64,000 nucleotides of DNA from Haliotis cracherodii (taxonomy: Eukaryota). The translations under genes and the position numbers were made by a program. The stretch lies in contig NW_027266265.1 of NCBI RefSeq assembly GCF_022045235.1, positions 56,978,001 to 57,042,000 of the forward strand, given 5' to 3'. Under the pieces are notes generated by a model that was not told where the DNA came from, searched no databases, and saw only the letters and a program-made list of their open reading frames with translations. Below, one piece after another: positions 10,100-55,958 of the stretch. The stretch's first letter is position 1. Each line of letters starts with the position of its first letter.

Positions 10100-11070
10100 T
10101 TATCCTCTACTTGACATGCCTTATCTCATACTTATCCAATACCTGACAAGCCTTATCTCAAATTTGACAAGCCTTACTTCATATTTGACAAACCTTACGT
10201 CATACTTGACATGCCTTACCTCATACTTGACATGCCTTATCTCATACTTGACATGCCTTATCTCATACTTAACATGCCTTATCTCATACTTGACATGCCT
10301 TATCTCATACTTGACATGCCTTATCTCATACTTGACATGCCTTATCTCATACTTGACATGTCTTCTCATATTTGACAAACCTTATCTCATACTTGACATG
10401 CCTTATCTCATACTTGACAAACCTTACCTCATACTTGACATGCCTTACCTCATACTTGACATGCCTTATCTCATACTTGACATGCCTTATCTCATACTTG
10501 ACAAACCTTATCTCATACTTGACATGCTTTATCTCATACTTGACAAACCTTACCTCATACTTGACATGCCTTACCTCATACTTGACATGCCTTATCTCAT
10601 ACTTGACATGCCTTATCTCATACTTGACATGCCTTATCTCATACTTGACAAGCCTTAACTCATACTTGACATGCCTTACCTCATACTTGACATGCCTTAC
10701 CTCAAACTTGACAAGCCTTATCTCATACTTGACAAGCCTTATCTCATACTTGACATGCCTTATCTCATACTTGACAAGCCTTATCTCATACTTGACATGC
10801 TTTATCTCATACTTGACATGCCTTATCTCATACTTGACAAGCCTTATCTCATACTTGACATGCCTTATCTCATACTTGACATGCCTTATCTCATACTTCA
10901 CATGCCTTATCTCATACTTCACATGCCTTATCTCATACTTCACATGCCTTATCTCATACTTCACATGCCTTATCTCATACTTGACAAGCCTTATCTCATA
11001 CTTCACATGCCTTATCTCATACTTGACAAGCTTTATCTCATACTTGACATGTCTCATCCTATACTTAACA
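10100..11070. repeat. 21-bp minisatellite (ccttatctcatacttgacatg)n, about 45 copies
   Basis: Directly visible tandem array. Confidence 0.97.
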
Positions 11071-12113
11071 AGTGTTTTGACTTTTCTGGTGTGTAGCAAA
11101 TCTTTACCAACAGAATTTAAAGAACAGCATTCACAATATGACAATGTTGGGTGAAACTGATGAATTGAGACTAGTCACCAATTCAGCTGGAAGATAGCAT
11201 AAACACCCCACCCCACCACCCATCCACCCATCCCACCACCCACCTTGAAAACCAAATGTAGTAGGTTGTAGGCAGTACAACTGACTGAAAGAGGTTTCTG
11301 ATATTTTGGACCCCTCCCTCTAAACATGCTGGATCCACCCTGGGATGATTACAATGTTGTTGAAAACACACCAGCAAGAGTTTGGTGTAGACAGACCAAG
11401 GATTACAAGGATTTGTACCCACAACCATGAGATAAAACATTGCCAAGGGAAGCAACTCTGCACAGGGTGATGCAGAACCTTAGACCACTGGGCCACCTGT
11501 GTCCCTCAACATCTGATACACTGTGACTATCTTTCACGCTCATTTGGGAATGTTAACATTAATAATCTAGAAGAGGTTCCTTCAGGCAAATAATGACTCC
11601 ACATTCGAGCATTATCATCATCACCACTTGGAACTGTCTTTGCCCTACTGAAAATACAATGAAAAAACCTTTCAACCACATACAAGAAAATCTGAAAGCA
11701 AGTTATTTGTTGAGAAACATGAAACAATGGTTAATAATCATGTCGTAACTTGTTCTCAACAAGTCTTTCTTACCCAAACAATTGAAGAATGATTGATGGA
11801 ACAGTCATTACTTTTATGCAAATACTAAACATAATGTTCATTAAGACATACAAATGTACAGCATTGTAAAATCGTGAGTCTGACACGACACACAACGTAC
11901 CAGTTTTCTAACAAAACAATGCAGATGGTCACAGGACAGATAATTTCACAGACAAGGAAAGGACCATGACAAGAATTCCCAGAAACATTTCTAACCTTGA
12001 CATACTAACAGACATTTGCATCAGTATCATACAAGACTAGTTAGCACTTGGTAGGGACATGGAAATATCTCACTGTTACAGGACTCAAAGCACTCAGGCC
12101 ATAATACATTAAA

Positions 12114-12458: not shown

Positions 12459-15400
12459 AATATTACAGGTTCATCCAGACCTTGCCTCACAGTTTACTGT
12501 CCCCAAACACACGAAGAATATGGCTCTGTACCCTACTTCCTTTACTTAAATTGCACCACACACACAGTTCTACCAAACGTGTGAAACTTCATGTGAATCA
12601 CCTCCATTGACAGTCAATGTACACACATGACTTTAACAGAAGCTTCAAAAAGATGAAAAACCCGCATAACAAAATGGCACCTGCCTCACATTTTTTAAAC
12701 ATTTGGATAATTTCTAATAATTAGAATATTGGGGCTTCCAGTTCATGTCTGGTATAATATTTTACTTGGCAGTTGGAAAGTGTATCATTTCCATGGCTGT
12801 ATCAAATATTCACAAGGCATCAGGTAGTGACGAGTCACTTGAGACTTAACATACCTACAACAGGTGTACTAGTTCTGTGTGTATATATATATATATATCT
12901 AAGGAAGTTATATGGTATGAAAATTATTCATAAAATACTATTATCTGTGGATATGTACACAACTTCTCAAGCCACTGGCAGTTTAAGTGAACAGTTTTCC
13001 AAGCATTATCTGATTGGGTTTCACACACTGGTAGCTTGCTAAACTTATTTGATCAACATACACATTTGTTAACGACCTGTATGAACGCATCCCTTTGAAG
13101 ATGACTTTGCTTTCTAATTGAGTTCCTGTTGTCATGGAGACAGCATGTGGAGAGTGAGTGAGTGAGTTATTCAACACCTGTTTGATATGTAGATACAAAC
13201 TGTCACATGCCAGCTCAAGTTAGACTACGTAAATTCTGGTAACTATGGTAACCTGCAGTAACTGTGAGGTTCCTTTGTTTGAATGGGTATGTTCTTCATG
13301 TTTGTAGGAATGTTCAGCAGGAATGGGTTTCACTGCACCCAAGTGGGGATTTAACTCAGGTCCTTGGAGCATAACAAACACTGAACCCTTAGGCTACCCA
13401 CCCTGGACTAACACACAAAGACCTAGCCTTACGTTGCACAAAATTTTAACAAAACCAGACAATTAATAAAACTGTCCTTTCATTCTTAAGCGTAACTTTA
13501 AACTGTTCAGGAGCCACTGTAGCACATGACCATTGTGATTCCTGCAGCCCCAAGCAGGGTCATCACTCCCCCTGTGAGTGGGTGAGTGGGAGAGTCCAAC
13601 ACGACTTTTAGCAATATTCCAGCAATATCGTGGCAGTGGACACCAGAAATGGGCTTCACATATTGTACCCATTGGGGAATTGAACCAGGCCTTTGGCATG
13701 ACACCTTACCCACTAGGTTACCAACAAACACCCCCACCCCCACCCCCACCCATACCCCTGACCCATTATGGGGCAACCTCAGATAAAAAGAAGAAGCTTT
13801 AATTGGTCTCAAAAACAAATTAATACAGGAAATTGTGCGAAAGTTAATTTAATTCTGTTAATAGCATTTTTCAGTTCCCATTCACGAATGACAATCTGTT
13901 AAAAAAAGATTAATCTGAATTACCCCATGCTGTATGTAAAAACTCTGGTGAGAATTCGTCCTTACCCCAACGACTACCTGGAAACCTCTGACATCATGTG
14001 AACATGCTCCCATTCTTACAACTTGTGAGATGACAATTAACATATTTACATGGGACAATGACAAAATGTACACTACGATATGAAAAGAATTTAAAATTGC
14101 ACAAACTACATTTTTTGATTTGTAACAATGCTTAATATCATTATTTGGGTCATACAGCACTAGCTAGTCTGATTACTGTGACGAAATACTGGACATTGAA
14201 AATAACAAAACACTGCAGAGACAGAGTAAGTGAGAAAAGCATTGCCTCACTCTTAAACTGGCTTAACTCAGGCTTAAAATTGGTTCTAAAAAAATAACTC
14301 TATATATTTCATGTGGGCAAGCTGTTGGCCTTTTTTTCATCGCTTTGTGTGCGTCCAAAGTATGTTTGTTTGACATTTGCATTATAATCGCCTTCAGGCA
14401 GAAAATATTCTTTTCTCTTTGGGGGAGTGTTGTTTCCAGGCATATTCCTGTCTTATATGCCTTCCATATAAGTCTTACAAGAAAATCACAACCATACCCC
14501 CACCATGAAAAATAGGTTTTCTTGTCACTAATTTTACATTGTAGAAAATTTGGGAGAAAAATACTGTTACTGGTGAAGATGTCTTTCAGAGCATCACACT
14601 GCATGTATTAAGATAATCTGCACAGATCTCACTGGTCGATCTTTTGAAATGTAACTTACCCAAAATATAATACTTGTGTAACTATGGTAACATGCCCTTA
14701 AGTGCTATGTGCAGTAAGTAGGAAAGTTTTTATGACTGTTGAAATGGGAGTGAAATGATGGTCATCCAGCACACAAGTACCGATCTTGCCTACTATTGAG
14801 CAAAGTGATAAACACACCCCCCTCCTCCCCATCCTACCTGGGTGTGATGAAGTTGTGAATGTTAATCATAATACATCACTTAATCACATGCATGTGTGAC
14901 AGTATCCTATGTTTCGACTGCAGCTTAACTCCCCCATGACAAGCTGCCATTACAATTCTTGAATACACAGCCGTAAACATACAGCCTGCCTCCATCCTCT
15001 AATTTTAGCACTAAGTTGTTGCTTGTTTGGTGTTTAACGCCGCACTCAGCAATATTCCAGCTATATGATGGGGGTCTGTAAATTACTGAGTCTGGACCAG
15101 ACAACCCAGTGACTGACGTCATGAGCATCGATCCACGCATTTGGGATCGATGACAGTTGCGTGGATCGATGTTCATGATGTCAATCACTGGATTGTCTGG
15201 TTCCTCAGTAGGTATACAAACTAAAGAAAGAGTGTTCTATACAAGGATGACGTATAAATCCAGTTCTACAAACATGACTTGAAGTACAGGCCAGTCAATA
15301 CAATATGCATTTATTACATTCAAGATCAGAAATCAGGCTAAAATCGCAAGATTTTACAATCTAGTGACATGACAAGCACAAGATAAAATCATATTTTGGC

Positions 15401-15566: not shown

Positions 15567-16404
15567 TATGGGTGAAATGATATATGGTGCACCGTGAATT
15601 TTCATGTGACGATACGATACATTTTTTCTGTATTGATAAAATATGATACACTTCCTAAAATAAATTACCACTACTCGTTTAATTACCACATCCTTATTGT
15701 CAGTCAAATATCGCAAAATGTGTTGTAATTAGTGTTTCAAGTTCACTACTAAAAATACCCACTACGAACATGTGAAATATTTATAGTAAGAAGTTTAAAG
15801 GCAATTAGATGTAAATATGTGTATTCTTATCGTATCGCAACCTATGTATCATGATATGAATAGATCGTGACCTATGTATCATGATATGAATAGATCGTGA
15901 CCTATGTATCATGATATGAATAGATCATGATGTATGTATCATGATATGAATAGATCGTGACCTATGTATCATGATATGAATAGATCGTGACCTATGTATC
16001 ATGATATGAATAGATGGTGACCTATGTATCATGATATGAATAGATCGTGACCTATGTATCATGATATGAATAGATCGTGACCTATGTATCATGATATGAA
16101 TAGATGGTGACCTATGTATCATGATATGAATAGATCGTGACCTATGTATCATGATATGAATAGATCGTGACCTATGTATCATGATACGAATAGATCGTGA
16201 CCTATGTATCATGATATGAATAGATCATGACCTATGTATCATGATATGAATAGATCGTGACCTATGTATCATGATATGAATAGATCGTGACCTATGTATC
16301 ATGATATGAATAGATCGTGACCTATGTATCATGATATGAATAGATCGTGACCTATGTATCATGATATGAATAGATCGTGACCTTGCTGTATCGTTTCACC
16401 CCTA
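15567..16404. mobile_element. hAT-like MITE carrying an internal 30-bp minisatellite
   Basis: TIR tatgggtgaaatgata / tatcgtttcaccccta; about 18 copies of gacctatgtatcatgatatgaatagatcgt at 15840-16383. Confidence 0.7.
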
Positions 16405-17141: not shown

Positions 17142-17228
17142 TCATTTCTTTGTTGTCCCAGTCTTGTTTTGAAGCGTGCTGTCGTCACCGTTTTCCTCAC
17201 TCTTGCCTGATTCTTCCTTGTCATCGTC
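17142..17228 (-). CDS. RRM/zinc-finger gene, last coding exon (acidic tail and stop)
   Basis: ttgtttcag|GACGATGAC...; DDDKEESGKSEENGDDSTLQNKTGTTKK*. The six exons sum to 990 nt (329 aa + stop). Confidence 0.8.
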   Translation of the reverse strand, partial: DDDKEESGKSEENGDDSTLQNKTGTTKK

Positions 17229-19177
17229 CTGAAACAATAAACAACATGTCACATGAGATTCAGGTGTCGTGGAGTGAGTGGGAGAGTGAGTGAGTGTGGG
17301 TTCACATCTTTTAGCAATAATCCATCCATATTACAAGAGTGAGAGAGTGAGTTGGGTTTAACGCCGCTTTTAACAGTATTACAGTTATATCACGGCATGT
17401 CAGCTTAATGTGGGAGGAAAGCCCGAAGTGATGCAGGTCTCAGAGGTTTAACACTTCGGTGAAACCCACGAGCACGGGTTTGGTGCTGACAAACCCAGAA
17501 ACATAATCGGGGCGAACCGGGATTCGAAACCACAATCATAGGTTTCTGGCATGACCAAGGGACGCAACTCTGCACAGCGAATCGCGGCGCCTTAGACGAC
17601 TGGACACCCGTGCCCCCAATATTACAAGAGGGATAACCAGAAATGTTTGTTTGTTTGTTGTTTAACATCGCACTCAACAATATTCCACTTATATAAAAAT
17701 TAAACTCTGGACCATGATGAGCATCGATCTACGCTATTTCGATACGAGGACATGCATCAACCAAGTCAGCAAGCCTGACCCCCCGATCCTGTTAGTCACA
17801 TCTTACGACAAGCAGAGTCGACTTTATGACAACCAGGGCACCAGAAATGGAGTTCACACATTGTACCCATGTGGGGAATCAAACCTAGGCTTTGGGATTG
17901 GTGAGTGAAAGATTCAACTATCAGGATACCCCACCACAGTGTCTTGTGTGCACCCACTCAGCAATATTCCAGCTTCATGACGGCAGGCGGTGAAGGATCA
18001 AGCCTGAACCAGACAATCAAATCCACTGATGGATATTGTGAGCACTGATCAATGTTATCTGGATATGATGACAGACAAATGACGAAGTCGTCAAGTCCGA
18101 CCACCCAATCCATCAAGCTGCCTCTTATAACCGACAACAATGATCATTTCAAGTATTTGGGGGTTTTCTTCTTGAACCACTTAAATTAGTGAATGCTAAT
18201 GCACATGCCAGCAACCTGACACTTTCCGGACCAGGCAAACCAGTGGTCAACAGCATGAGCAACCATCTCATCATTCAGCCGTGAGGACAAATGAAGATCC
18301 TGGTCAGACATTATGACTAGCAGTGTAACGATAGAGCAAAATAGTATTGTATTGTGATATGAGGCTTGAAACACAAATTGATTTACGACCCTACCATCCA
18401 TACTCTCAATACGAGTAATATTGGTGTAAAAGATGTGAACAGTAACAGAAACTGTTCAACTACCAGCCTCCGCAGAATCTCTAGTGTTTCATGGTTTTAT
18501 ACATTTCTACCCTACAATATCCCATCTTTGAAATTTAATAACAAATGATTAGGGTAGTGATTCACCTGCAAAATGAAAGAGTATCAACTCGTCAAATAAA
18601 AGAACTGTATGGGGATACGAACCGTATTGCACCCATAGTAGTGGGATATGTATCTTATCTCGACCCCACCATATCGTTACACCTCCCATTGTGACCATAC
18701 AATCCTCATCAGTCATCTACAGCAACCTTGGTCTAAACAGGCTCAAAATTTTGAAAGCGCCATCATCACAAATGAGTGGTTATACACACTCTGTACTTAA
18801 ACCTCATTAAGTGGGCAGTTGTTCAAAGTTAGATGTTGGATACAATTTTGATTCCTGAAGTAAGTTGATGGGGTGGTAAACGTCTGCAACGTTTCCATCC
18901 GACAAAATCAACAACTGTACGCTCAAGGTCACTTTCCTCATGGTCATACATAAAACAAGATACATTTTAAAGAAATGCAAATTAAAAGAAATATCGTGAC
19001 AGTCCACAAAACTTGCTTCACAACTTGTGGAAGGATCACAAGCAGGACTTCAGCATGTTCACAATTAAGTTCTTGCAGATGTGGGGGTTATGTCTGAAAA
19101 TCTAAGGAATTCAGCATTTCCTGTCCAACATCAAACTCTTAAGCTGTCCTAAGGAAGCAACAAAGATGACAGCTCAC

Positions 19178-19284
19178 CGTCTTGAAGATCTTGACAGCAT
19201 GTTCAGCCTGGGAGTGTTGTACCAGGGACCACGCACTGTTAAACTGGGCGTCACAGGATGCACACAACAGCTGCGACGGCTCAT
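19178..19284 (-). CDS. RRM/zinc-finger gene, coding exon 5 (C2H2 finger, BCL11 ZF1-like)
   Basis: ccattccag| ... ACG|gtgagc; DEPSQLLCASCDAQFNSAWSLVQHSQAEHAVKIFKT. Confidence 0.88.
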
Positions 19285-20089
19285 CTGGAATGGACACTAA
19301 CATCAATCTTCTTCTTCATATAATAACAGACCATTTACCTTAGTGGGCACCTATTTTCTCCAACAATATGAAATGGTTAAGTTTCTAAAATGTTCTAAAT
19401 ATCTAAATCATCTTGAAATTTAAGTTTAAACAAAAGTACAAACAATATTTCGGTCGAAGGCATTTTTAATTTAATGTTAAATATGAACAAGGCTGATCCA
19501 TTTCAAGTCTAAACTTGATTTCTCTGCCTCTTTATCATCACTCTTACCCAAGGTAATCTTAACAAGAAAACAGCTTTTTCACTATAAGAATTTTATTTAG
19601 TGAACATATACTATTACAAAAGTCTTATGAAGCCTTAAGAAGAGATAGGCACTAGGGTCCCTTCATGTCATCAGAAAAAATGACTAAACGTGAAATTAAT
19701 ACACACAAAAGGCCTCTTCTCTAGAAATAATCATTAATAGCTCCAATTCTTGAATTCAGTCTTGATAAGTATCTCGTAGAAAGGCTAACTTCAGTAGTTT
19801 CTGAGAAAACTTGTCCCCATAGCAGACACTATGCACCTTGTACAGCAACATGGATTAAGGGACATTACTCAAAATCCAAAAACGTAACAAGGGAAGTAAC
19901 TCTGGGAAAAAAATAACTTAAGACACCAGTTTTAGAACTCATTTGAGATCATGACCAGTAATCTCAGGGTGTAAAATTTCATTTCTCTGACTTTCATAGT
20001 TTTGGAGACCAACAAACTCCGTTCCTATATCCCCCATGCCACAACATGGCAGGGGATTATTGGAAATTTAAGTACAAATTGAATATTCA

Positions 20090-22810
20090 TATACTTATCC
20101 TATCTCACACTTTGCATATCTTCCTTCTTATTCATTCCTATCTGGAAACGTGCAACAACCAGTCACCTCTCTTTCTTAGAGCAATCAGACTAGAAGAACT
20201 GAGATGGGATTTAACGAAACAGCATGAGATCGGGAATACATGCCGAACATGTTTTCACATGTCAATGTTCGTGTAGCTGAAAACACATAAACGACTTACA
20301 TCCCGGACCGGCATTGATTCTTCAAAGAGGATGCTAAGCTATTTCCCACAGACAATTGGGTGTGATTGTTTGGTAACTCTTTTAACGCTCCATCAAGGTT
20401 AAACCTTGATGGAGCGTTAAAAGAGTTACCAACTGGTTATCAAACGCATTCGTGTGCATGACATAAAGGAGAATGACAATATCCAGAGAGGACCTTCAAA
20501 CGAAAACTCCGCATCACAAATACTCAAGGCAGAGGTGAGCGGAATACAGGTTTGTGACGCTTCTATTTGGTAACCATGGTAACAGCCGGGCCTTACGGTG
20601 ACATCATTGTTGAAGATTAAACAGTCTCTACAGACCAGTTAATCCCCCCAGCAAAGAGACTAGGTCTGGGAAACCCAAACAATAAAAATTTGCTCTCAAC
20701 ATCAAGGTTAACGATTAAAGATAATTATGTATAAACAATTGTAAAACAAAGCAAGAATCATGTGTACATTACATTTCTATCTGTGTTAGCTGGGCTGTGA
20801 CAGTTGTTGCGACAAAATCAAAGGGCCCAACTTGTTGAAACCTGGTACATCTGTGACTGAGATAACGCGAAAATAGTGAGAGGCAAAAACTGTGTCCGAC
20901 TTCCAGAAGCACCTTGCCATGGTAGCAGAGAGGGTGCAGTTACTGTGTAAGGCCATGGTGGAAGCAACCGTTCGAGTCTCGTATGGGTTGGATGTGCGGG
21001 CGGAGGCAGCTCAGCAAAAGTATATGCTCGAAGGATGATGCAGCTAAGCCGAAAGAGAGCATAGTACGCGAAATCTCCGAGATGAATGTTGTTTATAGCG
21101 GAATGAAGAGTCTCTTTTGAGATCTTTTACGATGATGTGAAGTGCTCAAATTGGACAGAGGGAGAGATCTTCCTGATCAGAGTCCAGAGACGAACACCGA
21201 TCCCTGGAGGGAGAGTGATGCGGTTTGGCACTGTATTGGAATCAGTCATCAGTGGGATGACAAAGCAGGGAGCGAGCGTGGTCTGCAGCAGATCTGCAAA
21301 CCCAGGTGGGTACAGGTATACATATCACTGGTGGTACACTGTGTAGGTGTCATGGCGTGGATACTCCCACTGGCTGTAAATTCAATGTTGGTGATGGTAA
21401 TCTATGATAGGGAAGCGATCTCTGTAATAGGAGTGAGTGAGTGAGTATGGTTTTATGCCGCTTTTAGCAATATTCCAGCAATATCACGGCGGGGGCACCA
21501 GAAATGAGCTTCACACATTGGACCCATGTCGGGAATCGAACCCGGGTCTTCGGCGTGACGAGCGAACGCTTTAACCACTAGGCTACCCGACCGCCCCCTC
21601 TGTAATAGGAAGACCATCCCAAGGGGAAACAAGCTGAAGTTCGATCACCCGAAATCAAGGTGGACCTCGATTCATGAGAGGATTCCTAAGATGCCTGTCT
21701 GGGTCTGGGGAGCTCTGAACGTAGGAGCAGTGTGTATGATCGTAGTCCGAGAAGCGTTTAGATTAAGAGTGGGAGCGCCAATCTTGATCCTTAGACACTG
21801 ATTTCGATCCTGTGTGGCTTCCTTCTGACGATCGGGAATGTCCTGAAAAGCAGCCTTGGAAGGAGCATTGTCTTTCCTCCCACGATTGTGCAAACTTGAC
21901 TGATCTAAAAGCGGGATCTTGAGCGGAGGAGCAGGTCCAACCGACTAGGCGAGAGCGTTGTTAGGAGCAGTCGCCGAAATTGAAGAAGGGTTGACCTTAG
22001 GAATGGAGAAATGACAGAGGAGTGGTTGTGAGATCGGGTAGGGTAACATCATCTGTTGAAATCTGTCGGAGACAGTGGTGTCTATAACCACAGAATCTTC
22101 CAAGAAATGACATTTCCCGCATCTAGAGTCCAAAGTACACTGGTCACGACAATCACAGCACATCTTGTGAGCATCTGACGTTGAATATGTGGGTCGACAT
22201 TTAGTGAGTGAGTGAGTGAGGTGGGTTTAACGCTGCTTTTAACATTATTCCAGTTATATCACGGTGTGTCAGCTTCATGTGGGAGGAAAGCCTGAAGTGA
22301 TGCAGGTCTAAGACGTTTACCACTTCGGTGAAACCCTTGAGCATGGGTATTGTGCTAACAAACCTAGAAACATAATTGGGGCTAACCGGGATTCGAACCC
22401 ACAATCATTGGTTTCTGGTGTGCCCAAGGGACGCAACTCTGCACAGCGAATCGAGGCGCCTTAGACGACTGAGCCACCCGTGCCCCAGCGTCGACATTTA
22501 GCACCAGACGGACAAAGTTTGCCCTTCTTCCCCATAAAAATACATATTATCCAAGCAATACATCCACACGGGTTGCTGATGAGAAAGAGAATGAGTTGGT
22601 AGAATGACGCGCACGGTCAAAGTGTGGGATGTTACCGTGCACGAGAGCACATAATTGACCCAGTTGTTGGTCGATACCATAGGTGCTGGGGTGTGTTTGG
22701 CTAAATGACTCTGTTTAAGAAGCTGGAAACATGGTTCAAGCACATTTCCATGTAGGATCGAAGAAGGAAGAAGATATGCAAAGTGTGAGGTAGGATAAGT
22801 TTAAAATTTA
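20090..22810 (-). mobile_element. Decayed DIRS-like retrotransposon in an intron of the RRM/ZnF gene
   Basis: Inverted termini of about 55 bp (acttatcctatctcacactttgcatatcttc at 20093; gaagatatgcaaagtgtgaggtaggataagt ending 22800). Removing the SINE at 22203-22489 restores a Cys-rich Gag-like start MGKKGKLCPSGAKCRPTYSTSDAHKMCCDCRDQCTLDSRCGKC. Downstream frames are degenerate. Confidence 0.6.
21433..21597 (-). mobile_element. tRNA-derived SINE family A (representative copy)
   Basis: A/B boxes (TAGCCTAGTGG, GGTTCGATTCC), (CTCA)n tail and 13-bp TSD ctctgtaatagga. Other copies near 6046-6225 (+), 8430-8590, 13580-13720, 23242-23407, 35495-35657, 43600-43772 and 46643-46797 (TSD acttttctaagaa). 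Confidence 0.9.
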
Positions 22811-22924
22811 AATGTAAACAATTCTGTGGCATTATTAACTTCTTATCAATGTCAAATTTGTATACAGCATTGACATAAAATATTCATCGATACATCATAT
22901 CGTGATAAAGGATGAAGTCCCAAC

Positions 22925-23062
22925 CTGACACGGGGGGCGGAGGGTTTTTCTGGCACTGGCAGCTGAAACGTAATCGACAGGGAATCTTCTTGTGCTGTGC
23001 CAAACTGTGTAGACTGTTAAACTGGAGCTTGCACCGACCACAGATCAGAACGTCCACGGAGG
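22925..23062 (-). CDS. RRM/zinc-finger gene, coding exon 4 (CCHC finger, BCL11 ZF0-like)
   Basis: ttttgtgcag| ... G|gttggg; SVDVLICGRCKLQFNSLHSLAQHKKIPCRLRFSCQCQKNPPPPVS. Confidence 0.85.
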
Positions 23063-23554
23063 CTGCACAAAAATGATAATCAGTCAGAGATCTATTCGAA
23101 CACAGATATTCACAGGTCAATGATAATGAGGGATATTCATACAAGCATATTCGCAGGGACTACAGGCATTCAGAAGCAAACGTTTACCACTACAAGACTG
23201 TCTAAAGCTGTCTATGCCAAAAAAAACTGTTGAATAGGCAAGTGAGTGATTGAGTATGGTTTTACGCCGCTTTTAGCAATATTCCAGCAATATCACGGCA
23301 GGGGACACCAGAAATGGGCTTCACACATTGTACCCCTGTCGGGAATTGAACCCGGGTCTTCGGCGTGAAGAGCAAACGCTTCAACCACTAGGCTACCCGA
23401 CCGCCCCGAATCAGCAAGTAAAGGTTGAACTTGGCTCTAAGCATACTCTTTAGTATACATGTATTTTAGTGCCATTATGTTATGTACATAGCCCTTAGAT
23501 GGGGTAGTCCACACTTGATGAGGGTTCACCTGTCCTATGTTGAGGTTGTTGGGG

Positions 23555-23945
23555 CTTCAAGCAGAGAGGCATCGTATTTTCAAGCAGAGAGGTATCGTGT
23601 TTGGGTAACATATAAGATTAACATAAGATCGGCTAAAGTGCTTGGTATGTCGTCAGGTCTTCAAGCAGAGAGGTATCTTATGTGAGGAATAGATCAGATT
23701 TACATAAGATTGGCCATAGTGCTTGGTATGTCGTCAGGTCTTCAAGCAGAGAGGTATCGTGTTTGGGTAACATATAAGATTTACATAAGATCGGCTAAAG
23801 TGCTTGGTATGTCGTCAGATCTTCAAGCAGAGAGGTATCTTATGTGAGTAATAGATCAGATTTACATAAGATTGGCTATAGCGCTTGATATGTCATCAGA
23901 TCTTCAAGCAGAGCGGTATCATGTTTTGGTAACAGATCAGATTTA
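23555..23945. repeat. Tandem repeat of about 81 bp with alternating variants
   Basis: ttcaagcagagaggtatc recurs near 23579, 23660, 23741, 23822 and 23903. Confidence 0.9.
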
Positions 23946-23982
23946 AAAGGTCAGCTACAGTGCTTGGAATGTTGCTCCCCAC

Positions 23983-24161
23983 CTGTGTTGATGGAGGAGA
24001 TTTTCGACTTGGTGGCGCTACTGGAGGTGGAGGTGGAGGGGGTGGGCTTCTTGGTCGGGGGTTCTGATGTGTCGCCAGATAGTGTCACCAGGGTGCGCTT
24101 CATGCTGGAGTTAACTGACGGAGTTGTGGGCGTTGTTGGCTTTGAATTCAAACTTGAACGC
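23983..24161 (-). CDS. RRM/zinc-finger gene, coding exon 3 (S/T/P/K-rich linker)
   Basis: cattccag| ... AG|gtgggg; open frame RSSLNSKPTTPTTPSVNSSMKRTLVTL...SKISSINT; phases 2 and 1 fit the neighbours. Confidence 0.8.
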
Positions 24162-25021
24162 CTGGAATGATGAGATGATATTGCAGATTAGAGACACTTA
24201 TTTGAAACATTCTACATACAAACAAAGAGGCAGCCAGTCTAATTACTGAGTACCAACTCCAGACCTCAAGGTTATTTTTTCACTGATCACCTTCGATGTG
24301 AAATGTCTTTCACATCCAATTTTTGGAGTGACATAAACACGGTCAACATTCTTGTACACAGAATATTCCCAGGGGCCAAAATTTGACCACAGATCCACAG
24401 GAATCATCACAAAAAAATCCGAAAATTGAAATTATTAGAAGAAATCCCAGTTCAGGTCATACTAAAATTAACTAATATTTTAGCTTTGCAAAGAGAAACA
24501 CTTATAACAGGACCAAAGCAGTTACGGGGTAGAATAGGTCTTCAGCAACCTATGCTTGCCATAAAAGGCGCCTATGCTTGTCGATTAATGGAATCGGGTG
24601 GTCAGGCATTGGTTGATGCATGTCATCATAACCCAATTGTGTAGATCACTGCACATGATGTAAATCACTGGAATGTCTGGTCCATACTTTATTGTTTACA
24701 AACAGCCATCACATAACGGGAATATAGTGTGTGGCGTTAAACAAAAACAATTTCTTAAATCTAAGGTTAACATGACATTAGTTATCAGCCTGATCAGGGT
24801 TACAAATTGATTATATTTTCACAAGTCTGCAAAAATGATCTGCAACAGAATTGGTAAAAGTGGTAGTCCACAAAGACATGTGACTTGTCCTTCCTGGACT
24901 TACTTGTCTCTGACCATGCCGACAAGTAGGGTATGTTAACACTGAACCCATGTCATTCTTGTTCCATAAAATTGCACAAACTATCACCTTGCTAACATTC
25001 CCTGGAGTGGTTGAAACTTAC

Positions 25022-25082
25022 CTTTCATTGGGTGGTGTTTTCTTGATTCCACGGCCCTTCGGCTCAGAGGCTATATTTGTTG
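25022..25082 (-). CDS. RRM/zinc-finger gene, coding exon 2 (end of RRM)
   Basis: ctttcag| ... |gtaagt; encodes (A)TNIASEPKGRGIKKTPPNE(R), comparable to hnRNP C DINLAAEPK; frame-compatible with both neighbours. Confidence 0.88.
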
Positions 25083-25571
25083 CTGAAAGAAGAACCAGTA
25101 TCTTAATACTGTTATTGTCACTTAAACGCACACCGATTCACTTGGTACAGATTACTTCTTAGGGGAGTTAATAATGGGTTATGCATGTTAGGAATCCAGA
25201 CACGTCAAGTCAGTCAATAAATTTCGTAGAGTAATCTAACAACAGCTTCAGGTGCACAGTCAGATAACAGCATGTCCACAACTCAGTTATACATGTTACT
25301 TATTAATGGATCAAGATACGACATATTGGACATGGACAAATCTTCATGGGTTGCATACACTACGTTCCCTACATTGTCTGTACACACAAACACACACACA
25401 CAGTCAGTCAGCTTATGAAATTAGGTCATGTATAACTCATGAATGTCAAATGAGCCCTATTAAGAGAAAGAACCTTATGTGAAACCTACCACTGCTTTAC
25501 AGTGAAGCAATGTGTAGAGCAGATACCACACAGATGAGACCCTTGTTGCACACAATGTCAAATAAAAAACC

Positions 25572-26073
25572 AGAGCTCCAGATAACCTTTTGGTGTTGTG
25601 GGTATTTTACCCATGCATTTTAAAATCATTGGGTATCAGTAATTCTATCTGGGTATTCAAATTTCTGTTACCCACTAGTTTTTACACATGTGGGTATTTA
25701 AGTTAAATATTTAAAAACACTTCATCTAGTCCCTGCAAACAATTGTCATGTGGGTTCGAGAGCTTTATAGGACTGAAAAATACTGCGATACTTCCACAAG
25801 AAAGTGTGATGGCAAATGATCATGATGTAACTGTCATCGTGGATTTTGGTAAGGCATGTCCGTATATATTTTCAAAATAAGTTTGATTTGTTAATTGAAT
25901 ACGCAGGGTTACTTCACAATATTTTGATGATACGCACAAGTTTTATTTTTGTAGCGTATCTGTAATGTTCGTTGCGTATTTGATACGCTTGAATTTTATT
26001 TCACTGCATATTTCTGCATTTCTGATGCGTATTTTATGCAGATACACCATGTACACAGCTAATCTGGAGCTCC
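25572..26073. mobile_element. MITE (TIR gagctccagat)
   Basis: cagagctccagataa ... taatctggagctccg. Confidence 0.55.
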
Positions 26074-26204
26074 GTGTACTCAATGAGTACTCATTCGTGT
26101 GAGCACTTGTTGGTTTGTCTATCACATGAAACAGGTCGTCGCTGGATTAGTTTGTTAATTATAGTAACAAGACAGTAAACTGGCCATATGTATTCATGGG
26201 TCAT

Positions 26205-26890
26205 GGTTTGGTTTGTTTGCTGTTTAATGCCGCACTTAGCAATATTCCAGCTATATGACGGCGGTCTGTGAATAATGGAGTCTGAACCAGACAATGAAGT
26301 GATTAATATCATGAGCATCGATCCAAGCAATTGGGATCGATGACATGCATCAACCAAGTCAGCGAGCCTGATCACCTGATCCCGTTAGTCGCCTATTACG
26401 ACAAACATAAATGCCTTACGGCAAGCATTGGTTGCTGAACACCTATTCTACCCCGGATCTTCACGGGTCTCATGGGTGATGGAGTAGCGTAGGGTATACA
26501 AAGCTGTAAAGTATCAATGATCTGGTTATAAAGTATTGTGATGAAGCTTCCATGAACCGCAGGGTAGTCTCTCTCACATACGATACCCAGTGTAGAAACT
26601 AAATTATTTATGTCTGTAGTATTTCTTTTGTTTGTTTGTTGTTTAACCTGCACTCAGCACTATTCCAGCTAATTGACAGCAGTCTGCAAATTATCAAGCA
26701 TGAACCAGACAATCCAATGAATAATATCATGAGCATCGATCCACGCAATTGGGATACAATGACATGCATGAGCCAAGTTAGCGAGCCTGACCACCCGATC
26801 CCGTTAGTTGCCTCTTACAACAAGCATAGTTACCTTTTACGGCAAGCTTGGGTTGCTGAAGACCTATTCTACCCCGGATCTTCACAGGTA
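26205..26890 (-). mobile_element. Two copies of SINE-like repeat family B (about 260 bp)
   Basis: Consensus gaagatccggggtagaataggtcttcagcaacc...gtaagaggcgactaacgggatc...gctggaatattgctgagtgcggcgttaaa(CAAA)n. Also near 5130-5650, 6375-6610, 7510-7735, 15020-15200, 24525-24750, 33295-33460, 51790-51890 and 61810-62030. Confidence 0.8.
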
Positions 26891-27503
26891 GTGTATGTAG
26901 TAGGGCTGGGACATTACACCAACTGTGCAATCTGATACACATCAGATACCATGCTCAATATCTGCTACATATCACAATAATTGCATGTGCTCTTATCTGT
27001 GATATGTAAGCCATCATTTTCATAGACAGGATGGCCAAATACCTGACGATTTACAGTTGGCAGTGTCAAGTATGATGCAATGGATGAAAATATATACGTT
27101 TTCACTACAAATTTTACTACTAATGTTTGTGGTAACAGTTAAAAAAGTAAATGTTTAACTCTAAGCAAAAATCAAAATATGTTACTTAATGTACGACTGT
27201 GATCAATACTTGTATTGAGAAATAAAAAACCATGACACACTTATGCAGTGTATCGTACCACTAGTCTGTAGACATTATGACAAACCCACACATGGAAATT
27301 AGCACTAGCCAGGAGCAGTTTTGTAATGTTAAACATGTTAAAGGTATCCTAAGGGATAGTAGAATTTCAAACACTGTGGTAAGTATTGCCATGTTATCAC
27401 TATTTGTGCTAGAAGATGTTCTTATTTAATTTCCATCAATGAAAACATACTGGAATAACATTCAAAAGTAAACTAGAGTTAGTTTGTAAAGCTGGATACT
27501 CAC

Positions 27504-27921
27504 CAATAACCTGCCCAGCATAATTCTTCCCATCTTCAGCCCCTGCCGCTATTCTTGCTTCCATTTCTCGCCCATACTGTACAAATGCATAACCCTTGTG
27601 CATGGATATTCCTGTGACTAATCCAAACTTCATAAAGATTTGCTCTACATCTTCTTTATTCAGAGCAAAAGTGTTCAAATTTCCAACAAATACTCGAGAC
27701 TTGGCAGATGCTGGATCATTTGTATTACTGCTGACAGGCCCGGGTCCTGGAGGGCCTGGAGGTCGAGGCGGTCCCTGTGGGCCTGGTGGGCCCGGTCTCG
27801 GTGGTCCACGCGGACCAGGTGGACCCATGGGTCGAGGTGGTCCTTGGGGACCAGGCCCTGGGGGCCTCATCCTGGGTGGTCCCATCCCCGGAGGTCGCAT
27901 GCCTGGTGGTCTCATCATCAT
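27504..27921 (-). CDS. RRM/zinc-finger gene, coding exon 1: P/G/R/M-rich N-terminus and hnRNP C/RALY-type RRM
   Basis: NTNDPASAKSRVFVGNLNT...ISMHKGYAFVQY...AAGAEDGKNYAGQVI parallels hnRNP C (TDPRSMNSRVFIGNLNT...SVHKGFAFVQY...AVAGEDGRMIAGQVL). Acceptor tttttcag (exon starts 27948); donor G|gtgagt, phase 1. Confidence 0.92.
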
Positions 27922-29865: not shown

Positions 29866-30627
29866 ATGAACAAGTTAGGACATGGCATTCTTCAGCTGGC
29901 ATGGAAACCGGTGTTAAAATCCATTCGCATTGGAGGCAAGAAACTATTTTCAAAGAAATACCTCCTGTACACTAACACTGCTCTGACGGTAGGACTCTCC
30001 CTCACTGGGGATGTCATCCAGCAGAACTTCCAGATCTGCAAACACAAGAACAGAACATGGGACAAGACTAGAACATTTCATGTGTCCTGCACGGGGTTCC
30101 TTGTAGGTCCGTTCTGCCACTTCTGGTACATGTTCCTTGACCGATGGCTGCCAGGGAGGACACTTCGGATTGTGTTTAAGAAAATTCTAGTGGATCAGTT
30201 GGTTTGTTCACCTCTATTTATAGGAATGTTTCTCATGAGTTTAAATTATATGGAAAATGACTCTTGGGACAAGGTCAAGCAGGACTTGGTTGAAAAAGGC
30301 AAAACATTATATCTAGCTGATTGGATTGTATGGCCCCCAGCCCAGTTGATCAACTTTCTATTTCTACCTACAAGATACCGTGTTTTGTATGACAATACTA
30401 TTGCATTTGGATTTGACTGTTACTTTTCATATGTGCGTTATGATAAAGTCTATCCACAAGATGACCACACGCAAGAAGCAGAGAGTGAAGACACTCATGT
30501 GATGACCACAGTGGACAAGGAGGATTCAGACTCTTGGCAGTTGCATGTGAATAGTGAACAATTAATAACCTGTGATAAAAGCAAGTCTGTTTCAGGAGAT
30601 TTATGTGAACAACACATATTTTCATAA
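29866..30627 (+). CDS. MPV17L2: Mpv17/PMP22 family protein (Mpv17-like protein 2-like), single coding exon
   Basis: 253-aa ORF with LLYTNT...GDVIQQ...WDKTRT...GPFCHFWYMFLDRWLPG...KKILVDQLVCSP...DWIVWPPAQLINFLFLPTRYRVLYDN; acceptor ttttctttttcag ends at 29824. Confidence 0.9.
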   Translation: MNKLGHGILQLAWKPVLKSIRIGGKKLFSKKYLLYTNTALTVGLSLTGDVIQQNFQICKHKNRTWDKTRTFHVSCTGFLVGPFCHFWYMFLDRWLPGRTLRIVFKKILVDQLVCSPLFIGMFLMSLNYMENDSWDKVKQDLVEKGKTLYLADWIVWPPAQLINFLFLPTRYRVLYDNTIAFGFDCYFSYVRYDKVYPQDDHTQEAESEDTHVMTTVDKEDSDSWQLHVNSEQLITCDKSKSVSGDLCEQHIFS

Positions 30628-51668: not shown

Positions 51669-54276
51669 TAGCAGCAACACAGCAGATCACTGGCGCCATG
51701 GGTACCGGTATCTCCAGGGATCGTCATTATAGACAAGTATATCTCTTTGGCGTATAAAATTCTTCGTGTCCCAGTTTCATAGATCGATACTTGTGTTGTC
51801 AAACACTCGATTGTCTGGTCCAGACTATTATTTACAGACCGCTGTCATACAGTTGGAATATTGCTGATTGTGGTGTTAAATAACAAAGAGAGAAAAAACT
51901 AGTGACATTGTTCCCAACAAGGCATTATTGCAGTGTGTTCACACAGATGTGACAACCCCATACGGAGTGCACTTAAAAATAAGTGGGATAATTGGCTTTG
52001 AAAAATAGTAACTTTTTCATTGGCATTCTAAAAGTTGGTGATTTAGTAAGAAAATGTACAACTTCATGGATAACAACTTCTAGTTTATTGCATATAGCGA
52101 CGTTTTGATGTAGAATCTTACATCATCACTCCAGCTTGATGACGGTGTAAGAAATTGCTATATTCAATAAACAGAAATGGTATTCCATAAATTTGTAAAC
52201 TGCAAAATAGTAATTTAAGAATTAATTGCAAAAAGAAAAATATAATGATCCTTTTCCCCCGAAGTGATTATCAATTGTGATGATACCTGCAGAAACAATG
52301 TAGCTAATCTAAATTACTGGAGATATTTTTTTAACAAAATTTGTCAAATATTTTACTTAATCGTGTAGCAATTATGTGGAAAATGGTTTGAAATACTGTG
52401 ATGAATCTACTGTCACAAGGAGCACAGATTTGAATATTTGTCCTATATGGTTGAATATTGCATAATGTACTTATATTTTTGCAACCAATTACCAAGTATA
52501 ACTATCATATACACCATTTGTATTTAGAAATATCAACTCAACTTTTGATGGGCGAGGGAGTATCTGGGTAGGGTCTGATTGCTTGGATATGTTGTTGTAC
52601 AAATAGTATTCGATATTGCCATGGAACTGAAGGATGTGACACTTCATCTCAAGTTGATATAACATAAATAGACGGTTCAAAAAAAGTCTGAAAGGCATTT
52701 AAAAGTGATACACATAAGGAAGAGAATTTATCGATGCCAACTTCTTTATTATGAGGAACACAGCGTCTCGGAAAAGATGCTTACTCCTTCACCTGATGAA
52801 GTATATACTCTGAAACATTGTGTTCCTCATAATAAAGAAGTTGACATCCATAAATTCTCTTCCTTATGGTTCAAACAGTTAACTGCGGTCATCGTGTAAC
52901 GCCCCAGCATGCACTATCTCAGTGTTCCTGTGACATCGTGTAACGTCCCAGCATGCACTATCTCAGTGTTCCTGTGACATCGTGTAACGTCCCAGCATGC
53001 AGTGTTCCTGTGACATGTTCAGTAGCATACAGCCACCAGTAATCAAAAGACAACGTACACTTTACAAGTATGTGTGTGAGTGTTTATGAAGCTGTGAGTC
53101 CTGCATCGTCTGCAGCTGGAATATACAGAGGTACTGTAGCTCACCTGGACATTGTCCAAACATTCAATACTTGGAGAGTTAAGATATAGCACTTATATAC
53201 CCCGTAGTGCCGAGACTTACAGTTGTATAAGGGAAAAGGGTGTCCAGTTTAATAATTGTTTGAAAATGTTGTTGTCATAACACAATTGGATTTATACCAA
53301 TATTCTGTCATTAAAATCAGATCTGTAACAAGATACTCGTGAAAGAGATTTTATACCAATGGACTGTCATTATGATCAGATATGTGACAAGGTTGTGAAA
53401 ACTGATTGTGTCGTGGATCATCTTCCCGAGGCAGGGGAGTTAGCTGACTGTAAAAGTCCATTTTCCATCCTTGCTGAACAAGACTGGAATTTCTGGGCTT
53501 GATCGTAGAACCACCTGCGTCTATTACGAGTTATGTCCTTCGATGTCCCTTCTATTGACCAATCAGAATCCACCTCTCATATCACTTACATTTGCTTCAA
53601 ACATAAAGGCGGCGCCCAGTAAAGACGATCTGATCGATAATCAAGATCTGTATTGTAATAAAACGGGCCTTACTTTGCGAAGTGCATCAAACCACGTGAG
53701 CACCTTGGTCAAAACATCTGGGAAATTTCTGTTGACAGTATGTTGATTGTTCACGTGTTTTTCAACTTCTGCAATTGACCGAAATCTGCACGGCAGTTGA
53801 CCGAAATCGGCACGGCAGTTGATGAACCGGATGTGGATTTTGTTACACAATTTTGATTGGACTATTGGAAGATGGTTGTGATTGTGGTAGATAGCGATCA
53901 TGTGATGTTATTGTTTTCTTGTGAACGAATATATACTGAATGAAATTAATAAGGGGACAGATACAGAAATTTTTTGTATGCCATGAAATCTTGAGGACTG
54001 GCAGATACAAGCATTCCACTGTCTTATTCAGTGGATATGAGGTGCCACTATTACCAAGACAATCAACATTGTTCCCTCATTGTTTTCCATCAGTATATGT
54101 TGATTTCCGCGCTCCAGATCCTGTGATGTGTACTGTTGAGATGGCACTGCCCCACCAGCATGTGATAGCCATACACAAATAAAGCTATTTATACATTGGA
54201 GAGACTTTATTTGTTTTATACAGCAGTTTTGAAAAGTGTGAAAGAGATGTGTATAGCTTTTGTAAGATCAGGTATA

Positions 54277-55791
54277 ACTGTACCACTAAGTCCAGGACTG
54301 AACCACTAACTCCCGGACTGAACCACTAACTCCCGGACTGAACCACTAACTCCAGGACTGAACCACTAACTCCAGGACTGAACCACTAACTCCAGGACTG
54401 AACCACTAACTCTAGGACTGAACCACTAACTCTAGAACTGAACCACTAACTCTAGGACTGAACCACTAACTCTAGGACTGAACCACTAACTCCCGGACTG
54501 AACCACTAACTCCAGGACTGAACCACTAACTCCAGGACTGAACCACTAACTCCAGGACTGAACCACTAACTCTAGGACTGAACCACTAACTCTAGAACTG
54601 AACCACTAACTCTAGGACTGAACCACTAACTCTAGGACTGAACCACTAACTCTAGGACTGAACCACTAACTCCAGGAAAATGAACCACTAACTCTAGGAC
54701 TGAACCACTAACTCCAGGACTGAACCACTAACTCTAGGACTGAACCACTAACTCTAGGACTGAACCACTAACTCTAGGACTGAACCACTAACTCTAGGAC
54801 GGAACCACTAACTCCAGGACTGAACCACTAACTCCAGGACTGAACCACTAACTCCAGAACTGAACCACTAACTCTAGAACTGAACCACTATTTCTAGGAC
54901 TGAACCACTAACTCTAGGACTGAACCACTAACTCCAGAACTGAACCACTAACTCCAGGACTGTACCACTAACTCTAGGACTGAACCACTAACTCTAGGAC
55001 TGAACCACTAACTCTAGGACTGAACCACTAACTCCAGGACTGAACCACTAACTCAAGGACTGAACCACTAACTCCAGGACTGAACCACTAACTCTAGGAC
55101 TGAACCACTAACTCTAGAACTGAACCACTAACTCTAGGACTGAACCACTAACTCTAGGACTGAACCACTAACTCTAGGACTGAACCACTAACTCCAGGAA
55201 AATGAACCACTAACTCTAGGACTGAACCACTAACTCCAGGACTGAACCACTAACTCTAGGACTGAACCACTAACTCTAGGACTGAACCACTAACTCTAGG
55301 ACTGAACCACTAACTCTAGGACTGAACCACTAACTCCAGGACTGAACCACTAACTCTAGGACTGAACCACTAACTCTAGAACTGAACCACTAACTCTAGG
55401 ACTGAACCACTAACTCCAGGACTGAACCACTAACTCCAGAACTGAACCACTAACTCTAGAACTGAACCACTATTTCTAGGACTGAACCACTAACTCTAGG
55501 ACTGAACCACTAACTCCAGAACTGAACCACTAACTCCAGGACTGTACCACTAACTCTAGTACTGAACCACTAACTCTAGGACTGAACCACTAACTCCAGG
55601 ACTGAACCACTAACTCAAGGACTGAACCACTAACTCCAGGACTGAACCACTAACTCAAGGACTGAACCACTAACTCCAGGACTGAACCACTAACTCTAGG
55701 ACTGAACCACTACTTCTAGGACTGAACCACTAACTCCAGGACTGAACCACTAACTCTAGGACTGAACCACTAACTCCAGGACTGAACCACT
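54277..55791. repeat. 20-bp minisatellite (ggactgaaccactaactcya)n, about 75 copies
   Basis: Directly visible; abuts a 34-bp array. Confidence 0.97.
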
Positions 55792-55958
55792 TTATATCTA
55801 TAAGGACCACGAATATTGGTCCACCTTATATCTATAAGGACCACGAATATTGGTCCACTTTATATCTATAAGGACCACGAATATTGGTCCACGTTATATC
55901 TATAAGGACCACGAATATTAGTCCACTTTATATCTATAAGGACCATGAATATTGGACC
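55787..55958. repeat. 34-bp tandem repeat, about 5 copies
   Basis: ccactttatatctataaggaccacgaatattggt. Confidence 0.93.

Follow-up and report, generated by a model that had tools for sequence, protein, structure and literature searches.

The 64-kb window analysed here, the whole stretch of Haliotis cracherodii DNA under study, contains one real, already annotated gene, which on sequence comparison is the abalone's sole orthologue of hnRNP C/RALY, a family of nuclear proteins that bind pre-mRNA, and an ordinary, single-copy member of an invertebrate hnRNP C-like group. Its product combines an hnRNP C-type RRM with a CCHC and a C2H2 zinc finger, and we judge it very likely both that this identity is correct and that the combination is an old bilaterian layout that was lost in vertebrates.

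The gene occupies 27921..17142 on the minus strand, where six exons encode a single protein of 329 amino acids (990 nt in total, comprising 329 codons and the TGA stop at 17144-17142). All introns follow the GT...AG rule with pyrimidine-rich acceptors, and the exon phases are compatible (0,1,2,1,1,0). Exon 1 (27504..27921) provides the start ATG, a low-complexity, P/G/R/M-rich N-terminus (aa 1-62) and the greater part of the RRM (aa 63-139), and is followed by a GT donor at 27503. The C-terminal extension of the RRM, NIASEPK (xNxAxEPK in the family), lies together with a short basic stretch in exon 2 (25022..25082), while exon 3 (23983..24161) encodes a disordered S/T/P-rich linker (AF2 pLDDT <50) that includes the basic patch PPTKK and a KRTLVTL motif common to mollusc and brachiopod homologues. 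Exon 4 (22925..23062; phase 1-1) carries the CCHC finger C227-x2-C230-x12-H243-x4-C248, preceded by an invariant D-x-L-I-C-G and followed by L-R-F-x-C-x-C. Exon 5 (19178..19284) adds the C2H2 finger C273-x2-C276-x12-H289-x4-H294 of BCL11-ZF1 type, with a DEPS lead-in and the residues W284 and L286, and exon 6 (17142..17228) an acidic/serine-rich tail, such that the protein ends 35 residues past the C2H2 finger. Using the RRM alone as a query we recovered an identical 329-aa public protein (XP_046327397.1, XP_046327479.1, XP_046327558.1 and XP_071092454.1), named "protein VASP homolog" in Haliotis rufescens and "uncharacterized protein" in H. cracherodii. This public record also supplied the sole full-length sequence for our searches. 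Homologues from oyster and Tribolium produce collinear tblastn matches to exons 1, 4 and 5, and a starfish homologue matches exons 1 and 5. Other public records of the gene differ: in the H. rubra model the finger exons are translated in the wrong frame, indicating that annotation at this gene is not uniformly reliable, and a 146-aa protein that is 99% identical over the RRM continues past the first donor into intron sequence.

The assignment to hnRNP C/RALY comes from the RRM. In a phmmer search of the PDB, the best matches were hnRNP C1/C2 (1wf2, E 1.6e-22), 2mxy (2.2e-22) and RALY (1wf1, 6.5e-22), with the next family, PUF60, at E 4e-7. The RRM exon scores 38.9 bits against RRM_1 in Pfam, the AF2 model of the domain has a pLDDT of 92-97, and a six-frame search of the whole genome (E<=0.001) retrieved one hnRNP C-type RRM gene, namely the exon in the window. 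Vertebrate hnRNP C1/C2, RALY and RALYL have an RRM of the same type, with about 55% identity to human hnRNP C (1wf2) over 76 residues by our count from the printed alignment, and 57-59% identity over 75 residues of the RRM in tblastn searches with vertebrate representatives. These proteins likewise continue with an xNxAxEPK extension, of which P147 and K148 are nearly invariant in a 60-sequence family alignment headed by the abalone protein, and then a basic/S-T-rich region. The abalone protein differs from them in its long P/G/R/M-rich N-terminal tract and in what follows the linker: the vertebrate proteins have a basic region and a leucine-zipper tetramerisation helix, whereas the abalone protein has the CCHC and C2H2 fingers at that position. 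A zipper-like helix is present in the vertebrate representatives, which found nothing significant in the 64-kb window beyond the RRM exon, and AF2 places helices of the abalone protein in the RRM and the fingers only, with no leucine-zipper helix among them. A first-pass annotation of this DNA had proposed a six-exon GT-AG gene for a 329-aa protein, an hnRNP C/RALY-type RRM and the absence of a leucine-zipper coiled coil, all of which are confirmed by the exon coordinates and phases, the identical public protein, the structural matches and the AF2 model.

The same annotation had called the gene chimeric and weighed a lineage-specific exon shuffle against an ancestral architecture lost in vertebrates. 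The survey of homologues supports the latter. Both fingers accompany the RRM in 145 of the 274 proteins fetched, most of them named hnRNP C or Raly-like, from molluscs (gastropods, bivalves, cephalopods and a chiton), a brachiopod (Lingula), flatworms (Echinococcus/Mesocestoides), chelicerates (spiders and ticks), crustaceans (a copepod and shrimps) and many insects. Relatives with this layout include Tribolium castaneum hnRNP C, Lingula anatina XP_013382175.1, Penaeus vannamei hnRNP C-like 3 and Echinococcus hnRNP C; between these and other invertebrate hnRNP C/Raly-like proteins and the abalone protein the zinc ligands and flanking motifs are the same, and only the length and composition of the linker and the N-terminal tract differ. 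In echinoderms, of which five classes are represented, the RRM is accompanied by a DEPS-led C2H2 finger but by no CCHC finger. The 60-sequence alignment shows no variation at the eight zinc ligands or at D223, L225, I226 and G228. Many full-length open reading frames (~310-330 aa) reside on Logan/JGI contigs of only 1.2-2.3 kb, which leave no room for five introns and are thus consistent with assembled transcripts. An exon shuffle specific to abalone or to molluscs is rejected on this distribution, since arthropods, flatworms, a brachiopod and, for the C2H2 finger, echinoderms share the layout. Cnidarians, hemichordates, cephalochordates and tunicates lie outside the sample, and the timing of finger gain and loss is therefore only bracketed. 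A protein search with the fingers alone (residues 219-302) yielded 21 candidates, all of them mollusc RRM proteins, and is uninformative on distant relatives of the fingers. The fly orthologue of hnRNP C as used in PMC5570092 is Drosophila CG42458, in the literature on which we found no mention of zinc fingers; the fingers are present in the dipterans Phlebotomus and Contarinia. The layout had also been considered undescribed, which holds for the literature we searched, where no account of an hnRNP C/RALY protein with zinc fingers was found, but not for public databases, which contain the exact protein and its relatives, mostly under hnRNP C/Raly-like names.

Turning to the origin of the fingers, sequence similarity identifies the second finger as specifically BCL11-ZF1-like, above all other C2H2 fingers. 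Within the 1.18-Gb genome, the exon 5 finger and abalone BCL11 ZF1 are reciprocal best non-self matches, with E values of 8.2e-7 (next 0.08) and 5.9e-7 (next 0.37) and 51% identity. Local HMM scores for the finger are 49.4 and 43.9 bits compared to 24.2 for the next match, and the C2H2 segment of the 60-sequence family profile finds BCL11 (40.7 bits) and a BCL11-like paralogue (39.8 bits) and no others at E<=10. The two fingers share the (D)EPS lead-in, an SAW-x-L-x-QH core, the H-x4-H spacing and an I-Y/F tail; W284 is found in 59 of the 60 family sequences, L286 is invariant, and the AF2 model of the finger has a pLDDT of 88-95. The order of the fingers is that of BCL11A and BCL11B, with the CCHC finger first and an isolated C2H2 finger after it. 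The intron comparison with BCL11 is divided: in both genes a phase-1 intron precedes each finger exon, but the exact positions differ by one codon at ZF1, where the window gene splits the Asp codon and BCL11 the next Glu codon (a 3-nt offset), and by two at the CCHC finger. The abalone protein is not itself a member of the BCL11 family, as it has neither the NuRD-binding N-terminus nor the DNA-binding ZF2-3 and ZF4-6 arrays, and the true abalone BCL11 gene, with ZF2-3, is located on another contig (C45). The genome further contains a second, BCL11-like gene that has this pair of fingers too.

The CCHC finger does not share this close relationship. It had been read, along with the ZF1-like finger, as BCL11-like; the reciprocal matches and the family profile bear out that description for the C2H2 finger, while for the CCHC finger the comparison with BCL11 ZF0 fails on several grounds. 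The spacer from the second Cys to the His has 12 residues in abalone and in every family member that the regular expression picks up, against 14 in abalone and human BCL11 ZF0. The 14-residue spacer defines ZF0, and tetramerisation of ZF0 is tied to it and to a five-residue hydrophobic stretch (PMC12006351), which reads I-L-I-F-I in human ZF0 and L-H-S-L-A at the equivalent helix start in abalone (family consensus L-H-S-L-A/L). Against PF25491 (CCHC_BCL-11A) the finger reaches 12.6 bits with a cut-off of 27, and matches at E<=1 come from 12 of the 60 family sequences, the best at 0.015; the finger is missing both from the genome-wide PF25491 matches (E<=10) and from a genome search with BCL11 ZF0. 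A PDB search with it (E<=10) gave no match to the solved BCL11A ZF0 chains 9bv0/9b4p, which abalone BCL11 ZF0 hits at E 1.6e-8. We therefore reject its identification as ZF0 on spacer, hydrophobic stretch, PF25491 score and structural match. Throughout the 60-sequence alignment the ligands C227, C230, H243 and C248 are unchanged, and the predicted fold is beta-beta-alpha (pLDDT 85-93), a fold too generic to tell families apart. Its best Pfam match is CCHC_ZFPM2 (16.5-19.3 bits, below the cut-off of 27), and the C-x2-C-x12-H-x4-C geometry is that of FOG/ZFPM-type and other protein-binding CCHC fingers. It departs from these in its sub-threshold score (19.3 versus 27 bits), in lacking a multi-finger FOG context and in the conserved L-R-F-x-C-x-C extension, which is specific to the hnRNP C-like family. 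With the family CCHC profile, other CCHC fingers of this genome outscore BCL11 ZF0, several unassigned ones resembling the exon 4 finger more than ZF0 does. Exon-wise Pfam and PDB searches of both fingers gave sub-threshold generic zinc-finger matches only.

We favour, with reasonable confidence, the explanation that the protein is the invertebrate form of hnRNP C, in which zinc fingers take the place of the zipper and presumably serve as protein-contact or assembly modules. The abalone protein represents the form kept by most invertebrates, consisting of the RRM, a disordered basic/S-T-rich linker, the CCHC finger and the C2H2 finger. By analogy with vertebrate hnRNP C, the RRM presumably binds U-rich pre-mRNA. 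The two isolated fingers would make protein contacts, through self-association or partner binding, rather than read DNA, because they are single, separated by a linker and related to N-terminal fingers of BCL11 that are reported to multimerise, and because a near-invariant Trp and Leu occupy the helix face that normally reads bases. They could thereby supply the assembly function given by the zipper in vertebrates, where the fingers were later lost. The finger module and the N-terminal finger pair of BCL11 probably go back to a common, ancient exon-borne source that dates from the bilaterian ancestor or earlier.

A role in self-association specifically is a tentative proposal, somewhat short of an even chance, that draws on the analogy with BCL11A, whose ZF0 tetramerises and whose ZF1 has been modelled as a dimer interface (PMC12006351). 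The missing 14-residue spacer and five-residue hydrophobic stretch of the CCHC finger speak against it, as does the ZF1-like helix, where family-wide a polar residue sits at the centre of the stretch equivalent to the ZF0 hydrophobic run. A two-copy complex prediction for residues 219-302 with zinc scored 0.25 relative to a mark of 0.32 and argues neither for nor against self-association.

Isolated C2H2 fingers can also bind RNA, and the fingers might instead be auxiliary elements that widen or sharpen the RRM footprint on pre-mRNA. The remainder of the protein is an RNA binder, the fingers come after a basic linker, and among the weak Pfam matches of the C2H2 finger is zf-C2H2_jaz (E 0.096; E<=1 in 10 of 60 members), a finger type that binds double-stranded RNA. 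None of these matches comes near its threshold, however, conservation in the helix is strongest at Trp and Leu instead of at basic or polar residues, and the closest relative, BCL11 ZF1, has been discussed as a protein-protein interface (PMC12006351); we consider an RNA-binding role unlikely. Alternatively, the fingers could serve as docking sites for BCL11-family members or other chromatin proteins with CCHC fingers, and in this way link an RNA binder to transcription complexes. BCL11A-BCL11B hetero-multimerisation through the N-terminal fingers, cited in PMC12006351, is in keeping with such docking, as are the position of the C2H2 finger as the closest genomic relative of BCL11 ZF1 and the presence in the same genome of BCL11 and the BCL11-like gene with its finger pair, but identity to ZF1 is just 51%, the CCHC finger is not ZF0-like and echinoderm members lack it, which makes this very unlikely.

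That the model fuses two genes, or reflects rare read-through from a gene whose usual product has the RRM only, with the finger exons on a separate transcript, could be suspected from the 146-aa protein and the out-of-frame H. rubra model mentioned above. Yet the 145 proteins, drawn from several phyla and in many cases from short contigs without introns, repeat this collinear layout, the finger exons lack a start codon context of their own and continue the phases of the upstream exons, and no other coding or zipper-like exon candidates were found in the 64-kb window. We consider a merger extremely improbable and reject it on the cross-phylum collinearity.

To our knowledge, hnRNP C has been studied almost solely in vertebrates, and the zipper-driven tetramer of the vertebrate protein is central to models of RNA measuring and packaging. 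Zinc fingers instead of a zipper in the sampled protostome phyla, and in part in echinoderms, prompt one to ask how assembly on RNA proceeds in invertebrates, and suggest that the zipper is derived, a trait of vertebrates or at the least of chordates. A bolder and quite unlikely version of the preferred assembly reading is that the CCHC and ZF1-type pair is an ancient assembly module common to BCL11 repressors and ancestral hnRNP C, through which invertebrate hnRNP C would oligomerise on RNA and might form joint assemblies with proteins of the BCL11 family; the leucine zipper of vertebrates would then have replaced it later. If true, BCL11 ZF1, whose role is unsettled, could be interpreted from an RNA-binding protein, and flies, beetles and molluscs would offer a genetic handle. 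ZF1 belongs to a clinically important protein (fetal haemoglobin silencing, neurodevelopmental disease), and work on its function continues; its nearest relative is one of the two hnRNP C-like fingers. Within the abalone genome the finding is an ordinary one, a correctly annotated single-copy gene for which the product names "VASP homolog" and "uncharacterized protein" are misleading.

Each of the six minus-strand exons of the hnRNP C-like gene (27921-27504, 25082-25022, 24161-23983, 23062-22925, 19284-19178 and 17228-17142) was translated separately. All six have AG...GT borders with acceptors rich in pyrimidines, and the incoming phases (0, 1, 2, 1, 1 and 0) are compatible, giving a coding sum of 990 nt closed by TGA. 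The first-pass annotation had proposed six GT-AG exons encoding a 329-aa protein, and this model holds: a protein search with the 77-residue RRM piece alone retrieved a public 329-aa abalone protein (P0001) identical to it at every residue. Public annotation already contains the exact model, recorded in Haliotis rufescens as "protein VASP homolog" (XP_046327397.1, XP_046327479.1 and XP_046327558.1) and in H. cracherodii as "uncharacterized protein" (XP_071092454.1). The VASP name is due to the P/G/R/M-rich N-terminus of the protein, which we take to resemble arginine-methylation PGM motifs. The public orthologue model from Haliotis rubra (P0151) uses the same exons and reads both finger exons in another frame, producing a 336-aa product devoid of fingers, probably through an annotation or assembly frameshift.

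Comparison with other species argues that the RRM exons and the finger exons form one gene. A C-x2-C-x12-H-x4-C finger and a C2H2 finger were both present in 145 of the 274 proteins fetched, the majority of the 145 having been retrieved by searches started from the RRM. This two-finger family includes molluscs (gastropods, bivalves, cephalopods and a chiton), the brachiopod Lingula, the flatworms Echinococcus and Mesocestoides, and arthropods ranging over spiders, ticks, a copepod, shrimps and many insect orders; the usual public names are hnRNP C, hnRNP C-like and Raly-like. Many full-length family ORFs of 310-330 aa are located on contigs of 1.2-2.3 kb, which are too short for five introns and therefore look like assembled transcripts. 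Furthermore, oyster and beetle proteins match exons 1, 4 and 5 of the window collinearly in tblastn. In an alignment of 60 family sequences, all eight zinc ligands are invariant, as are D223, L225, I226, G228 and L286, and W284 is found in 59 members.

The exon 1 RRM matches human hnRNP C1/C2 (1wf2; E 1.6e-22) and RALY (1wf1; E 6.5e-22), the next family being PUF60 with a match fifteen orders of magnitude weaker. When the whole 1.18-Gb abalone genome was searched in six frames with the RRM, this locus was the sole match, and we conclude that it is the single hnRNP C-type gene of abalone. An AlphaFold2 model built on the 60-sequence alignment contains a folded RRM (pLDDT 92-97) and two beta-beta-alpha fingers (pLDDT 85-95), with disorder outside these three elements and no long helix. 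A zipper-like helix follows the RRM in the vertebrate hnRNP C/RALY representatives, and tblastn of these representatives against the 64-kb window gave nothing significant beyond exon 1. Both results bear out the initial impression that the leucine zipper is absent.

The C2H2 finger encoded by exon 5 is clearly BCL11-like in sequence, as had been claimed. Its top non-self match in the genome is ZF1, the N-terminal C2H2 finger of BCL11 (51% identity, E 8e-7; next 0.08), and BCL11 ZF1 in turn returns exon 5 as its own top non-self match (E 6e-7; next 0.37). The C2H2 segment of the family profile scored 40.7 bits against BCL11 and 39.8 bits against a BCL11-like gene, with nothing else at E<=10, and local HMM scores were 49.4 and 43.9 bits, with the next finger at 24.2. 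A phase-1 intron directly precedes the finger in both the hnRNP C-like gene and BCL11, the two positions being offset by one codon. The true BCL11 gene of abalone lies on contig C45; its ZF0, the N-terminal CCHC finger, scores 61 bits on PF25491 (the Pfam CCHC_BCL-11A family) and matches the solved human BCL11A ZF0 at E 1.6e-8, and its ZF1 stands at the start of a large exon that runs on into the ZF2-3 pair. The second BCL11-like gene (loci L009 and L003; G000:C2:48401533-48407158 in the abalone genome) is 8.6 Mb from the hnRNP C-like gene on the same chromosome. Its ZF0 exon scores 46.8 bits on PF25491 and has a 14-residue spacer; 5 kb past it, a ZF1-like finger opens a 427-aa exon with a further C2H2 finger at its end.

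The accompanying claim of a BCL11-like ZF0 in exon 4 did not survive closer analysis. Besides its CCHC ligands, ZF0 is defined by a spacer of 14 residues and a run of five hydrophobic residues (PMC12006351), whereas in the abalone CCHC finger the spacer is 12 residues long and L-H-S-L-A stands in place of the hydrophobic run. On PF25491 it reaches 12.6 bits against a cut-off of 27, and only 12 of the 60 family members attain E<=1. The finger is missing from the genome-wide matches of both PF25491 and BCL11 ZF0, and has no match at E<=10 to solved ZF0 chains. The family CCHC profile gave 31.8 and 28.6 bits for two other unassigned abalone CCHC fingers, 23.5 bits for the BCL11-like ZF0 and 20.3 bits for BCL11 ZF0. 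What exon 4 and BCL11 ZF0 have in common is a D-L-L-x-C-G-x-C hairpin and an H-K-K/R-x-x-C end. On these comparisons the exon 4 finger is best called a generic CCHC finger of the protein-binding type; the same order in BCL11 and hnRNP C-like proteins would nevertheless allow a common origin of the CCHC and ZF1-type finger pair.

Three unassigned abalone CCHC fingers other than that of exon 4, in large or unannotated ORFs, have the x12 spacing and H-K-x3-C end of the exon 4 finger: L014 (G000:C2:25281598-25281666) and L020 (G000:C1:44279488-44279577), each with a sub-threshold match to the Pfam BCL-11A or ZFPM2 CCHC families, and L019 (G000:C2:11101402-11101533), without any Pfam match. They suggest a broader, uncurated class of CCHC fingers. 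A conserved L-R-F-x-C-x-C motif (22925-22966, minus strand; residues 248-258) follows the exon 4 finger. Its C-x-C pair, five residues past the finger, occurs in 52 of the 60 family members and has no obvious partner ligand; the ten sequences without the full CCHC-x(n)-C-x-C-C2H2 pattern include heterobranch snails, Echinococcus and a copepod.

Vertebrate hnRNP C binds U-rich pre-mRNA. Given the strong RRM match and this established family knowledge, the abalone RRM would almost certainly do the same. Among the roles considered, protein contact seems the most likely for the two fingers: they would provide self-association or partner binding where vertebrates use the zipper, since they are single and isolated, occupy the position of the vertebrate zipper and have Trp and Leu, in place of base-reading polar residues, as their top-conserved helix residues. 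Auxiliary RNA binding by the fingers seems unlikely to us. The contact role also draws on BCL11A, where ZF0 tetramerises and ZF1 is a dimer interface in a model (PMC12006351); that the fingers instead dock heterotypically onto BCL11-type proteins we regard as improbable.

In echinoderms (crinoids, brittle stars, starfish and a sea cucumber), the hnRNP C-like proteins contain the RRM, which is doubled in crinoids, and just one C2H2 finger, in which the (G)DEP lead-in, Trp and I-Y tail are again found; none has the CCHC finger, which was either gained in protostomes or lost in echinoderms. Because echinoderms share the RRM and ZF1-type finger, this layout is older than the protostome-deuterostome split, in a comparison of protostomes, echinoderms and vertebrates. 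Vertebrates lack it. Between the two origins initially offered, the spread of the layout across many protostomes and, in part, echinoderms refutes a lineage-specific exon shuffle and supports an ancestral architecture lost in vertebrates.

The abalone gene and its relatives are already in public databases as predicted proteins, for which precomputed Pfam annotation lists the RRM alone. In the literature on the hnRNP C/RALY family and zinc fingers we found no paper describing the fingers, in agreement with the first-pass annotation, which knew of no description of the architecture. Work on Drosophila CG42458, which serves as the hnRNP C orthologue in fly studies, treats it as an hnRNP or neuronal marker and leaves zinc fingers unmentioned; the fingers are present in other dipterans. 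The link of the family's C2H2 finger to BCL11 ZF1 is solid and apparently unreported. We consider the abalone gene itself ordinary and correctly annotated; the zinc-finger form of the hnRNP C family to which it belongs has received little description.

Within and around the introns, short minus-strand ORFs (e.g., 13463-13699, 17796-17957, 21453-21632 and 22201-22404) have the patterns ..CE.HFWCP.. and ..I(A/T)GI(L/M)LK(A/V).. in common, which indicates copies of one interspersed repeat. Downstream of the 3' end lie two long tandem arrays with several open frames (10116-11154, coinciding with a strong GC skew of -0.35, and 15925-16362); a 24-nt-unit array reads MPYLILD.. / HVKYEIR.. and a 30-nt-unit array MIHRSRSIHI. 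Positions 54001-58000 reach a GC content of 0.605 against a background of 0.36-0.45, with a GC skew of about -0.33 and a strong AT skew. A single-exon ORF of the Mpv17/PMP22 family (29866-30627, plus strand; 253 aa, Pfam 73.5 bits) and the hnRNP C-like gene are arranged head-to-head, with about 1.9 kb between the ORF and the start codon of the gene; this suggests a shared bidirectional promoter region.
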